From Bugula neritina (Eukaryota; Animalia; Bryozoa), in the NCBI GenBank assembly GCA_964035545.1, contig OZ037767.1, forward strand, positions 5,782,707-5,846,706: a stretch of 64,000 nt of DNA, in the 5' to 3' direction. Below, one piece after another: positions 3,401 through 64,000 of the stretch. The translations under genes were made by a program, and so were the position numbers. Position 1 is the stretch's first letter, and the number at the start of each line of letters is the position of its first letter. The notes below the pieces were generated by a model. That model saw only the letters and a list, made by a program, of their open reading frames with translations, was not told the DNA's origin and did no database searches.

Positions 3401-4471
3401 TAGCAGTAGTAGCAGTAGTAGTAGTAGCAACAGTAATAGTAATAGTAGCAGTAGCAGTAGTCTGACTATAAGGATGGCTAAATTTGTATACTTCTAATCA
3501 ACAACAATGTTAAAATAGTAAAAGTAATAGAAATGAAATTTATCTTGCTTACCCGTTCATTAAGAGTGACTCCCCAGTACACTGATTTATCAAACACATG
3601 TTCTTCACACTCAACAGTCTCATTATTATTATTATTATATATTTTACAAGAATCAAGGATTCCATCTTTATCAATTGGTATCCATTGATATATTGATTGA
3701 TTGTGAACTTCACTGAATGGAGAGAAGCTGTCATTTTCCCAGTCTGGCAGTTTGCATCTAAAAATAACCTTATATGCATGTTTTTGAGAAGTTTATCTAA
3801 ATTTCAATTCATATATGCATTATTTTGATGTCACAATAAGTAGCAACCTGGAAGAGTTAACAGAAATTCCATTTTACTGCATATCAAGTTTTTGTTGAAC
3901 TTTTTTTCACTCAGATCTATTTAGTCTTTGTAAAATAACTCACATTTTTGAAAAGAAGTGTTCTATAAGCAGTGGGAGGGGGGGGGGTGACTGAGTGCAG
4001 TCATCCATGGCTTTTGAGTTTGAAGTTAGGAGCTCTCAACTCTAAACTTGAGAACTCTAAACTACTGCACTCATTTACCCCAACTCGAAGCTGCTTATAC
4101 AACAGAAGCAAACCCGGTCTTCTAACTTGCAAGTCAGCTTACTACTAACCATTACACTATAGAAGGGGGAGGGGGGATAGAGAATCTCATCACTACACTA
4201 ACATTTGTAAATGACCCATACTAACATTCTATGGCTACTCAAGTCTATTGAATTTTTTAGCACTAAATGTTGTTAATGCTCACGGCTGACCATTGCAATT
4301 AGTAGCGTATAGAAACTCTTACCTGTGATGAGGCGTTATGGAGTAAAACACTATTGCTAAAAAATGCATGGAGCAGGCCATCGACCCCAACGAGACTATA
4401 GAAAGTTGAATCCATTGATATACACCCAAAGCTCCCACTCCCTCTAGTATTTCGTCTATCTTTGATGGCAT
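464..4471 (-). CDS. SLC22-family organic ion transporter paralog A (exons 1-6; 3' part lies beyond the window start)
   Basis: GT-AG exons 4323-4471 (MPSKIDEILEGVGALGVYQW...), 3553-3757, 2758-2861, 2013-2167, 1088-1259, 464-682, with phases in frame. Contains MFS motif A DRFGRK, EIVGPTAR, QDWNWFQ and NETPHYL. Confidence 0.92.
2505..2715 (+). mobile_element. tRNA-derived SINE (family 1), in intron 3 of paralog A
   Basis: A-box TGGTCTAGGGG and B-box GGTTCGAACCC; core CATCCAGTCATAATTGCTCCTGTGCC shared with the copies at 14871 and 9585. Confidence 0.8.
2926..3461. repeat. Compound (AGT/AGC/AAT)n trinucleotide microsatellite in intron 2 of A
   Basis: Directly visible; source of the spurious poly-Leu ORFs. 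A short homologous tract lies at 12487-12555 in B. Confidence 0.95.
3963..4165 (-). mobile_element. Short foldback element (3963-4099) next to a degenerate tRNA-like SINE head (about 4100-4165)
   Basis: Inverted arms TATAAGCAG...CTGCTTATA and GGGTGACTGAGTGCAGT...ACTGCACTCATTTACCC; minus strand reads TAGTGTAATGGTTAG...GACTTGCAAGTT...GGGTTTG. Confidence 0.4.
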
Positions 4472-5639
4472 CTCTTTTTAAAAGTAGCTTTCAATTGTAA
4501 AAAAATTGAAAACTAGTGTCCAGCATTGATGAAGCAGTAAAAGCTTTATTAATGTGCTTAATGGATTAACTTGCAACCATGAAATGTTTTATTTTCTAAT
4601 AATGCGTTTTATCTAATCAGATAAACATTTGTGTAATTGTTTATTAAATGTTTTTAGCCTTTAATTATTTGAATATGTCTATTATATTATCTAGTTATTG
4701 TCATTAGCACGTACAAGTTATTAGCAATTCCAAAAAACATTCTCATTCAAGTCCTCAAGTGTTTCCTGTTATAATATTTTTTAATGCTAGAGATTCTAAC
4801 TGGAAGATTTAATACTATTTATATACTATTAGTGCTTGTAGTTACGTACATATGCACCTTAACATGTCCTTAGGCTATAATAGCACATAAAAATTATCAA
4901 CAATTTAAAAAAAAACATTTTCTTCATAATGTTTTTTTTGTTAGAGACAGAATATAGAGCTAATCATATTTTATTTGTAATTAAATCTACAGTATTCATC
5001 TTATTGGCTTAAAGGTAAAGCTGCCACAAACTCACAAACTGATTTGAATTTAGCCAAAGTTATCCAATGCCCTTATTGTCATTTAATCGATGTGTCAACA
5101 TATGTATCATGGATAGCATATCATATAACATGAATGACCTAATACAAATTTATTCTGCCGGTAGATTATGTAATATTATTTATCAAACTTAGTTTTAGCA
5201 ACTGATGATTTGAAGAAAATTAAAGTGTTTGTGTAATTTAATGGAGCAATTCAGTTAGTTGTAAAAACAGTTTCAATAAATGAATAAACAAATAGTATGG
5301 TTGATTGCACTCATTGTTTTGTGGATATAAAAATACAGGATCAATCATAAAAATTGAACAGAACACACAGCTTTAGCAACATAAAAAACAATATAAGATT
5401 TGAGCGTAAAATAAAATTATTACAGCTAATAATTTCATAGTCGTCTCCAATAAACATATTATTAGATTGAAATTCAACTGCAAACACTTAGAAACTTTAT
5501 GTCACTACAACCATAAGGCAGTAAGCAGACAGCATGCAGAGCAAGCATCACTTATGTCATAAACTTTATAAGACATATACATAGCTTATATGACATAGGA
5601 CATGGAAAGCATAGGGGGTGGGTGGGAGAGGGTGGCGTC

Positions 5640-61243: not shown

Positions 61244-61456
61244 TTTCATTTCTATAATAGGTGGTAAGCTAACTTTTATCATTGCCAAACTTGAAGAATT
61301 TTGACAATGTAAATCAAAGTTCGTAAAGGAAAAGTGAAGTTATTTATAGTAATACTACTGCATAAGTGCTGATTATATATGCTGGGTGAACAGAGATTCA
61401 ACAGTTTGTAAAAGTAAATTTATTTTATTTCATCAATAATCTGTGAATGTGCAAGC

Positions 61457-64000
61457 ATGGCTTCTACAAAGTATAAAATAGACTCTGTACTTGAAAAAGC
61501 AGGAGCTTTTGGAAAATACCAGTGGTTCCAAGTTGTTTTAAGCAGTTCTGGTTCCTTTATGGTTGCCTGCCATTTTCTGGTTATAGTTTTCCATTCAATC
61601 ACACCAAAACACAGGTAGGTAAATATTTACTTTTTTAGTGAAATAATTTATTCTCTTTCATGTTATAACACAAAAGCTTGTTGAATTATATAAAATCTTT
61701 TACGTGTCATGGGAAAACCAAATATTTTATGTCAACTATGATACGGAAATATCTACTTTTAGATGTAAACTACCAGACTGGAAAAATGACACCTTCTCTC
61801 CATTCAGTGAAGTTCACAATCAATCAATATATCAATGGATACCAGTTGATAAAGATGGAATCCTTGATTCTTGTAAGATATATACTAATAATAATAAGAC
61901 TGTTGAGTGTGAAGAACATGTGTTTGATAAATCAGTGTACTGGGGAGTCACTCTCAATGAACAGGTTAGTGGTGGTACAGAGTGAAACATACTAAGTAGA
62001 TGACAATAACTTTTGAAATAATTTAATCACAATTAGTAATGACAGTTTTAATGATGTAATTGTTTTGACAATAATTGTGAGTTTGCAATGGAAGCGTTGA
62101 TAGAAAGACAAACTTTTATCATAAAATATATAAAAAAAATGTTGTGGTGGTCTGATTAAAATCAAACTATTTGTGTTTTTTTGCTTCAATACCCTTGCAA
62201 AATTAATATATATCATCTGTCATCAATTCTTAGTGTTTAATGAAGTGTTTAACTTGGTAATAACTTTAAAGTTTCGCTTATATCTCTGCTTAAAAAGTAC
62301 GGAGCTTACGCAACTTTATGGAATTTCATTGTAGTTTGACATGGTGTGTGGAAACAGCTGGGCAGGCACAACAGTAAAAGTAATATACACTTGCGGTCTA
62401 ATAATTGGAGCTTTTGGTGCTGGAATAATCGGGGACAGGTAACCTTGCAAGCTAAAGTTAGTAACTAGACACAATTTAAAATATTTAAAGAGATTAAGAT
62501 GACTAATCAGTTAGTGGATTAGTGCTGAATGAAGTAGAAAGACAACTCCATTTCTAAATGATGAAGTAGCCTATATCACATGATGATAATTAATTTCATG
62601 GTAACGATACAAGAAACGTCAAATATTTTATACTAAATTTCAAAGTGGTTCAATTTAAAAACTGCTTTTATGTATTTGTATCAAATATACAGAGTAGTAA
62701 TAAAGTAACATATAATGGTGGTATTTTTATTTTTTGACTAGAAGAGCATTTTAATAGTGCTTTAGAATTCAAGTTTTCATTCATATTCAATACTGGTACC
62801 AGCAACTTTGCAGCTTGCCATGAAATGAAAATAAGCATCATGCTCTATAGCAATCAGCTGGTAATCTACAATTTCTTTGAAATCACATCTGTTCAACTGC
62901 TAATTAGTAAACAGAACAATTTTCAAAGCTTTGAAAATCTCTAGTTTTTGTTCACAGCACCTGGTTTTGTTAATCTTCTACTGCCATCAACATTTATTTT
63001 TAAAGTATTAACCTTTCAAAACAAAAATCAGTTTTTAGCTGAGCAGTAGCAAAAAGTAGAATGGTTTGTACATAAAAGGCAGCTCATAATGTAAAAATAA
63101 TGCGCTTTTTATATAGTAACTCTATACTGATTTTGGCACTTGCGCCATCTACATGATTTCTGGTTAGAAAACATACACTAAATATTTTAAAAGTTCCAGT
63201 CTTAAAAGTGATATGTAGGTTTCTTCATGCTGTAGTCTTTGAACCTAAATCAATGCCTTCAATTCATGAGGGGCCCAGTTTCCCAGACTCTATACCTATT
63301 GCTTTTACTACTTGGTAGGATTGGCAGAAGACTTGCTTTGATTGGTTTTTATTTTGTGGGAGGAGCAGCAGGCATAGTGACAGCATTCTCAGTCAACTAT
63401 TACATGTTTGCAGCTCTGAGGTTTATTGTTGGCATGAGTATGGTTGGAATCCCACTGCTAAGAAGTATCATTGGTAAAAATAAACCCATGAATATAGCTC
63501 TTTAAATGCATTTAAAAGTTTGTACTTATATAGGCCAAACCTAAAAACTCTACTTTGAATTTGTTCAGCATCTTTTGTTTGTTCCATCTCTAAATGCAGG
63601 TTTTAACCTAAAGATTTGATGATGTCAATATTGTCATTTTTAGCTTTAGAAATAACTGGACCTTCAAAGAGAAGCTATATTTTTGCAATAACTTCGGTAT
63701 TTTGGCCGTCGGGAGCTATGTTTTTGGGACTGCTAGCATATCTGATACAGGATTGGAACTGGTTACAGATAACAATTTCAATACTACCTGTGCTAGTTGG
63801 AGTTCTTACTATTTTGTAAGTAGTTGTTAGTAATACAAATGATTTAACTCTAATGAAAAACTCTATAAAACGTTAGAGTAATAATTTTGTTAAAATACTC
63901 AAACTTGTTCTATGCACATAAGTTATAATATGCATGTTCTTGAGTTTGTAGCTTCTTAAAGGAGACTCCACACTATCTGGTAACTAAAGGAAAGCACAAA
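61457..64000 (+). CDS. SLC22-family organic ion transporter paralog G (exons 1-6, truncated by the window end)
   Basis: Exons 61457-61614, 61763-61964, 62335-62438, 63319-63473, 63644-63815, 63952->64000. Motifs DRIGRR, EITGPSKR, KETPHYL. Confidence 0.92.

Follow-up and report, generated by a model that had tools for sequence, protein, structure and literature searches.

Recurrent gene conversion as the probable source of a shared extracellular-domain exon in an SLC22-like gene array of Bugula neritina

The window, a stretch of 64,000 nucleotides of Bugula neritina DNA, was found to be part of a cluster of 11 SLC22-like genes, in ten of which exon 2, coding for the extracellular domain, forms one pool that spans 96 kb and both strands. 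Judged from sequence comparison, these ten copies very probably swap exon 2 through non-allelic DNA recombination that has occurred repeatedly, over distances of up to 96 kb and in both orientations. The exchange takes place on a timescale similar to that on which two Bugula neritina lineages separated.

Genes B (positions 6066–13777, reverse strand), C (16101–20523, reverse), D (23077–28488, forward), E (33548–41854, reverse) and F (52194–59458, forward) are intact with nine coding exons each. Gene A (1–4471, reverse) is represented by coding exons 1–6, its exons 7–9 lying left of the window, and gene G (61457–64000, forward) by exons 1–5 and the start of exon 6. G runs past the window end and is followed directly by genes H–K, which carry four further copies of exon 2. 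A search of the Bugula neritina genome revealed no further close copy outside the cluster, and a metagenome search returned just chance matches of 17 residues (gut-metagenome contigs L026–L031). A search of RNA runs likewise yielded none containing the locus. A mobile exon cassette or repeat was rejected, since each of the 11 DNA matches lies in the cluster, where it occupies the homologous exon position. Concatenated exons were used for the frame check, the trees and the permutation tests; window exons were searched singly and full-length searches were made with database proteins.

The homogenised exon-2 copies in the window are those of gene A (3553–3757, reverse; 205 nt with one additional Asn codon), B (12643–12844, reverse), D (23491–23692, forward), E (40205–40406, reverse), F (52452–52653, forward) and G (61763–61964, forward). 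All have AG/GT ends and one open frame each, and all six copies named by an earlier sequence-only reading were recovered, the true count being ten with H–K beyond the window. The same reading had described six diverged paralogues sharing a nearly identical exon. Their neighbouring exons are indeed far more diverged, but D and E are alike throughout: the similarity spans the whole gene and E is a recent inverted duplicate of D, so this pair gives no evidence for exon-limited homogenisation. The reported near-identity of B and F was reproduced exactly, with three differences in the last 188 nt. Exon 2 of gene C (19800–20019, reverse) is diverged, with 76% identity to the other copies, and makes C a natural outsider, although a patch of 51 nt (19932–19982, reverse) is identical to B, D, F, G and I.

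Comparison of the ten genes over 44 pairs, which exclude gene C as well as the recent pair D/E, gave an exon-2 identity of 95.4% in DNA and 94% in protein. The synonymous difference pS was 0.134 (0.05–0.24 among pairs), far below the 0.60–0.80 of the remaining eight exons, which share 58–73% identity in the same pairs. Tree length for the ten genes was 0.24 for exon 2 versus 3.29 for exons 1, 5, 7, 8 and 9. A fragment permutation test for conversion was significant in many gene pairs (P<0.001), 29 of 65 informative site pairs in exon 2 were incompatible, and the gene tree was rejected for exon 2 by the AU test (P = 0.03), with KH and SH values of about 0.10. Exon 2 has a low GC3 (0.27 vs 0.35–0.39 in the other exons), and the GC-bias signature of conversion, a raised GC3 that conversion does not require, is absent from this exon.

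The cause of the similarity was assessed with orthologues from a diverged sister lineage of Bugula neritina and from Watersipora. Between the Bugula lineages, exon-2 orthologues differ by 4.2% and non-orthologues by 4.6% (permutation P = 0.40), the true orthologue ranking anywhere from 2nd to 10th, whereas in the other exons orthologues differ by 5–9% and non-orthologues by 22–36% (P≤0.011). Because exon-2 orthologues are no closer than paralogues, unlike those of the other exons, recurrent gene conversion is indicated rather than constraint. The exon-2 copies group by lineage (P = 0.003), a clustering that may be inflated by Pilon polishing of the sister-lineage assembly, which can increase sharing among its copies. 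In the lineage of the window, a lineage-specific exon-2 variant is common to the non-sister genes A, D, E and I; in the sister lineage two such variants occur in non-sister genes, and these are also found in contigs of d, f or i built from Illumina reads alone. In Watersipora, where a single exon 2 is visible at the locus, this exon shows a DNA distance of 37% and a protein identity of 54%, values within those of the other exons (33–38% and 44–56%).

One exchange is preserved together with its flank. The (AT)n array and the 39-nt end of intron 1 of gene D (23275–23490, forward) match the sister lineage's gene K, exactly so over 25 nt, and are unlike D's own orthologue in two assemblies, the intron of which is about 500 nt longer. 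D took K's intron end through the (AT)n repeat in a K-to-D transfer and, intron sequence having been carried along, the donor was DNA and not cDNA. As a sole route of conversion cDNA was rejected, since both the D/K and the A/B tracts contain intron sequence and no intron was lost. In general the tracts end where homology ends, mostly at splice sites.

The encoded proteins are clearly related to vertebrate SLC22 transporters. The top 26 PDB sequence matches were all SLC22 proteins (E-values 7e-58 to 1e-22), the first match outside the family following at 1e-10, and the best solved structures were URAT1, OAT1, OCT1–3 and OCTN2 (7e-58 to 1e-44). Identity to a fish SLC22 is about 32%. TIGR00898 was the best NCBIfam model (E 5e-88), yet scored under its curated cut-off; the sister-lineage orthologue of gene C (P0043) passes the Pfam cut-offs for Sugar_tr and MFS_1, and the single window exons gave weak matches in the domain search. 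A predicted structure model has a 12-helix MFS layout (pLDDT 67) with the loop unresolved. With URAT1, OAT1, OCT1–3 and OCTN2 the array proteins share this layout, a cytoplasmic helical loop and, between TM1 and TM2, an outer domain that carries four cysteines as well as sequons. Each of the 11 genes encodes three of these cysteines in exon 2 and the fourth at the beginning of exon 3, in alignment with cysteines of URAT1; each exon-2 copy has three sequons, that of C four. The scores for URAT1 and the OCTs are close and the genes cannot be assigned to OAT, OCT or OCTN; the cysteines of the third disulfide, found only in OCTs, are absent from the array genes. On these sequence features, the proteins are most likely 12-helix MFS transporters for uptake or exchange of small organic solutes, with a common outer domain, predicted to be disulfide-held and glycosylated, that most likely serves in folding and surface delivery. 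We infer that the paralogues have different substrates.

Homogenisation was attributed by the sequence-only reading to exon 2. This exon indeed holds the strongest tract, but exon 6 and parts of exons 3, 4 and 9 are affected as well. Exon 6, which codes for the cytoplasmic helical loop, is partly homogenised in D–H and more weakly in I and J; in the window this second, weaker tract comprises the exon in D (26791–27009, forward), E (35205–35423, reverse, with 110 nt identical to gene H), F (55529–55747, forward) and its start in G (63952–64000, forward), where it runs past the window end. In exon 4 (F, 53517–53671 and G, 63319–63473, both forward), codons 13–33, from TM3 to the start of TM4, show 95% identity among F–K and the flanking codons 61–62%. 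The start of exon 3 is partly homogenised in F–I and exon 9 in A/B.

These weaker tracts mostly avoid membrane helices, and exon 2 is the sole exon without one. Where residues are shared, the same codon is used at a frequency of 0.90 for the outer domain, against 0.64 for the cytoplasmic loop and 0.34–0.59 for the helices, including TM7, TM11 and TM12, which are 67–73% identical in protein. Identity drops where exons enter helices, from 0.93 to 0.79 in exon 6 and from 0.91 to 0.81 in exon 3. The same pattern is seen in an unlinked pair of SLC22 genes, in which exon 2 has 6 differences in 208 positions versus 150 in 1349 elsewhere (P = 6e-5). Some observations run against a simple division into tolerant loops and protected helices: broad homogenisation is not seen in the peripheral helices TM9 and TM12 or in the C-terminal part, though swaps would be expected to be tolerable there, the exon-4 tract contains helix residues, and in the unlinked pair divergence peaks (31%) in the second half of the cytoplasmic loop.

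The explanation we favour, with some reserve, is that of an old tandem array in which exon 2 is one recombining pool, with swaps tolerated by the loop but purged from the pore, in line with the theory of conversion against purging reviewed by Fawcett and Innan (PMC3924837). A swap of exon 2 between paralogues would leave the transport pore unchanged and be tolerated, while swaps touching the pore helices would erase differences in specificity and be purged. The helix exons would thus have diverged until pairing was no longer possible, and ongoing exchange would keep exon 2 similar enough to pair, making the process self-sustaining. Exon 6 may represent the same process in decay and gene C a member that has nearly left the exchange pool; the microsatellites in introns 1 and 2 would occasionally lengthen a tract without being required.

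It is possible, though on balance unlikely, that the same conversion operates while selection favours identical outer domains, for co-assembly, for a common partner or chaperone, or for one external ligand. The outer loop was reported to be necessary for oligomerisation of rat Oct1/Oat1 and human OCT2 (PMC11119549), and the paired receptors Siglec-11/16 keep their ligand domains alike by conversion (PMC5701461). Ten of the 11 genes, from three deep clades, belong to the pool, all retain three sequons and the loop cysteines, and it is again exon 2 that is homogenised in the unlinked pair. However, cryo-EM of OCT1 favours a role in folding and trafficking over intermolecular disulfides (PMC10567722). 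Moreover, orthologue pN/pS is highest in exon 2 (0.16 vs 0.04–0.15, small differences), every copy departs from the majority at one to five amino acids and the cytoplasmic loop is converted too, so a tolerant module fits these data at least as well as a selected surface. A system of constant ectodomain and variable pore, in which the ten proteins would co-assemble or dock on one partner and form mixed complexes with a wider range of substrates, gene C being excluded, is put forward tentatively and seems rather doubtful.

A mechanistic hotspot, in which exon 2 or its flanking microsatellites would start recombination with neutral effect on protein function, is considered improbable. Six of the eight introns with a perfect microsatellite are introns 1 or 2, which make up 22% of intron length (P = 0.002, or P = 0.008 with A/B counted once), and the D/K event passed through an (AT)n array. 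Repeats in these introns include (AC)278 in intron 1 (41126–41682) and (AT)45 in intron 2 (39727–39816) of E and degenerate trinucleotide arrays in intron 2 of A (2955–3461) and of B (12486–12556). Yet F, G, H, I and J, all fully homogenised, have no perfect microsatellite in introns 1 and 2 in this assembly, by which microsatellites are rejected as a necessary trigger. The flanking introns moreover follow orthology in nearly all pairs, and the exon 4 and 6 tracts lack such repeats and follow protein topology.

Similarity without any exchange, through nucleotide-level constraint (a hidden RNA, an overlapping frame or a regulatory element) or through an artefact of assembly or polishing, is highly improbable and largely refuted. 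In favour of constraint, exon-2 orthologue pS (0.128) is somewhat under that of the other exons (0.156–0.287), and most copies have a second sense frame without stops; but this open frame has a chance probability of 0.07 and is interrupted in F, H, I and C as well as in one outgroup, Rfam gave no match for exon 2, RNA folding was unremarkable (z = +0.67), and constraint predicts orthologues closer than paralogues, which the Bugula comparison does not bear out. The Watersipora exon 2 is moreover as diverged as the other exons. As for an artefact, the window matches the HiFi assembly tzBugNeri2.1, the available part of whose record gives 132x HiFi data and hifiasm without a polishing step. The copies hold private differences, independent read sets show the repeated exon 2, and read contigs join both edges of F's exon 2 to F's own introns without mismatch. 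Exon-restricted gene conversion, as first proposed from the sequence, is therefore supported on all three counts that could have told against it: synonymous divergence in exon 2 is far lower than in the other exons, the exon is not frozen between species, and the copies were not collapsed by polishing.

The process itself is known, and the array clearly adds a new instance of it. Fugu and zebrafish have regional gene conversion in their clustered protocadherins (PMC1852091, with Noonan et al. 2004 cited therein): in these tandem paralogues, too, a single extracellular region is homogenised, synonymous sites included, in a lineage-specific manner, while the part that bears specificity diverges. 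The protocadherin tract is contained in one large variable exon and has a raised GC3, whereas the Bugula array consists of polytopic transporters, some genes inverted, with a whole 202-nt exon homogenised between unalignable introns and no rise in GC. In Siglec-11 and Siglec-16 (PMC5701461), too, repeated conversion in each lineage maintains the similarity of an extracellular exon, with relaxed constraint on what is converted, while the rest differs; these two genes signal in opposite ways and their shared ligand has been tested, and the Bugula case comprises ten transporter genes known from sequence. Selection against conversion at specificity sites is known for opsin exon 5 (reviewed in PMC3924837) and for the ATP1A1 duplicates of Leptodactylus frogs (bioRxiv 10.1101/2020.08.04.234435). 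There too conversion homogenises where possible and functional differences are protected, but in these young duplicates the gene is homogenised apart from small peaks of divergence, whereas the Bugula array is at a late stage, with homogeneous islands in genes saturated at synonymous sites. Our literature search found no report of loop-exon conversion in SLC22 or in bryozoans, which is not proof of absence. Any link of the array to bryostatin or symbiont chemistry is speculation only.

The role of the SLC22 outer domain is debated between oligomerisation on the one hand and folding and trafficking on the other. In the array ten natural chimeras combine a common loop with widely differing cores, and gene C is an outsider, so that loop swaps and co-assembly assays can test this role directly. 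The array is also a clean late-stage example in which one exon of 200 nt has continued to undergo conversion although the remainder of the genes became saturated long ago; the sister lineage allows dating, and one event with its microsatellite anchor is still visible. Such exons break short-read assemblies, as seen in the JGI contigs, and mislead orthology assignment and the design of primers and RNAi.

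Eleven matches to exon 2 were found across the whole genome. All lie on a single chromosome within roughly 96 kb; ten have 95-100% identity and one has 74%. Annotation including the flanks of the window gave eleven genes, A to K, with nine coding exons each, and in all of them the exon phases are alike, the splice sites canonical and the frames without stop. The minus strand carries genes A, B, C, E, J and K, and the plus strand carries D, F, G, H and I. The six exon-2 copies reported by the sequence-only reading (A, 3553-3757; B, 12643-12844; D, 23491-23692; E, 40205-40406; F, 52452-52653; G, 61763-61964) were confirmed, each with AG/GT borders and a single open frame. 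Judged from their sequence, the cluster genes are SLC22-like and are named at family level, without subfamily. The sister-lineage orthologue of C passed Pfam Sugar_tr and MFS_1, and its best solved-structure relatives are URAT1, OCT1-3, OAT1 and OCTN2. Similarity searches used single exons of the window or full-length database proteins, and window exons were joined only for local calculations. An extracellular domain lies between TM1 and TM2, and most of it is encoded by exon 2. This exon supplies three of the domain's four cysteines, carries three sequons and is the sole exon without a membrane helix.

When C is set aside and the recent D/E pair omitted, exon 2 of the remaining ten genes is 95.4% identical with a synonymous difference (pS) of 0.134, whereas identity in their other exons is 58-73% and pS 0.60-0.80, close to saturation. 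The identity of exon 2 falls off at the splice sites. The low pS favours the earlier proposal of exon-restricted gene conversion. The homogeneity is real. In the read set that matches best, possibly the assembly's own source sample, contigs join F's own exon 1/intron to exon 2 and exon 2 to F's own intron 2 with zero mismatch, and exon-2 read depth is about nine times that of the flanks, which counts against a collapse of the copies. A run from a diverged lineage yielded a 112-nt contig of exon 2 that matches F at every position and has several times single-copy depth. For B. neritina tzBugNeri2.1, the genome report gives 216.00 Mb in 320 scaffolds plus the mitochondrion, 132-fold HiFi, hifiasm assembly and QV 53.7 (PMC11480708). 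Bugula short-read metagenome contigs were mis-assembled within exon 2, where they show deletions and duplications of the kind that a repeat in ten copies should cause.

The one sister lineage compared was the polished Virginia type-S assembly (PMC7576161), in which orthologues of B-G and I-K were recovered. Because its exons differ by 5-9% from those of the window (introns, about 15%), it represents a distinct lineage. Between the two, orthologues differed by 5-9% and non-orthologues by 22-36% in all exons but exon 2 (P<=0.011); in exon 2, orthologues were no closer than non-orthologues (4.2% versus 4.6%, P=0.40) and copies grouped by lineage (P=0.003). Exon-2 paralogue pS (0.134) equals orthologue pS (0.128), and the copies therefore last shared sequence roughly as long ago as the two lineages parted. 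Lineage-private exon-2 variants are common to non-sister genes. Since the Virginia assembly is polished, Illumina-only contigs of d, f and i, the sister-lineage orthologues of D, F and I, were examined, and they also carry the key Virginia shared variants. For the exon-2 copies of the window lineage, the AU test rejected the gene tree (P=0.03; KH/SH weaker) and 29 of 65 site pairs were incompatible. Concerted evolution of exon 2 is well supported. Two further runs from the study of the best-matching run resemble the Virginia lineage, so the reference may mix in, or represent, a different cryptic species. In Virginia gene B, annotated there as two genes, intron 4 is enlarged by an insertion of 4 kb that contains the remnant of a reverse transcriptase (L036:19962-24206).

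Secondary tracts track protein topology. Among D-H, exon 6, which encodes the cytoplasmic loop, shows 93% identity, dropping to 79% on entering TM7. Among F-I, exon 3 begins with 91% identity and drops to 81% in TM2. Among F-K, 21 codons within exon 4 reach 95% identity, with flanks at 61-62%. Exon 6 of gene I is of the shared type in the sister lineage but not in the window lineage. Synonymous sites are saturated even in the conserved helices TM7, 11 and 12; conservation of the protein is therefore insufficient by itself to hold a region in the exchanging pool. For an unlinked, distantly related SLC22 pair on another sequence of this genome (C5:2876-2899 kb), exon 2 is the most alike of the full exons bar one (6/208 differences, 2.9%, versus 150/1349; P=6e-5); the first half of the pair's cytoplasmic loop is identical including intron flanks, and the second half is 31% different. 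Exon 9 of A and B (B, 6066-6223; A, left of the window) forms a separate conversion-like tract with pS 0.32 (permutation P<0.001).

Exon 2 probably behaves as a tolerant module: loop swaps between paralogues would be tolerated and pore swaps purged, and ongoing exchange would maintain the homology that exchange itself requires (a framework for this is given in PMC3924837). Selection for an identical exon 2 as a common oligomerisation surface, as the sequence-only reading suggested, would accord with the reported role of the loop in oligomerisation (PMC11119549), but appears less likely in view of a structural counter-argument (PMC10567722), the highest orthologue pN/pS of any exon and one to five amino-acid departures in each copy.

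Intron 1 of D (259 nt) consists of an (AT)n array and, behind it, 39 nt resembling the end of the sister-lineage K intron, 25 nt of them exact. In two assemblies, intron 1 of D's own orthologue is longer (766 nt in the long-read assembly) and ends as in E, the sister gene of D. This is most simply explained if sequence of K, 76 kb distant and inverted, overwrote D from the common (AT)n array into exon 2, which suggests that the donor was DNA. Introns 1-2 are enriched in microsatellites (6/8; P=0.002-0.008), as a neutral recombination hotspot at exon 2 would have it, but these introns are free of microsatellites in five homogenised genes and such a hotspot is improbable. Pure constraint or artefact is a very improbable source of the exon-2 likeness, given the missing orthologue signal and a Watersipora exon 2 as diverged as the other exons of that distant bryozoan. 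Rfam at gathering threshold gave no match in the window; the folding of exon 2 is not unusual, and it has no conserved second reading frame.

Teleost protocadherins (PMC1852091) and Siglec-11/16 (PMC5701461) are established cases of region-restricted conversion, and no account of it was found in the literature for SLC22 or bryozoans. The process is already known, but its form here differs from both cases: the tract is a single short exon, shared by ten partners in both orientations, in genes of a transporter family that are saturated outside it.

Other features of the cluster include a LINE-type retrotransposon between E and F (43412-46501, plus strand), with one frame for an endonuclease (302 aa), one for a reverse transcriptase (727 aa) and a single stop between them, and (CA)n and (AT)n arrays immediately upstream of gene G (60847-61244). 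A perfect 111-bp tandem duplication (18841-19053) spans the acceptor and the first bases of exon 4 in gene C, so that this exon has a second possible acceptor.
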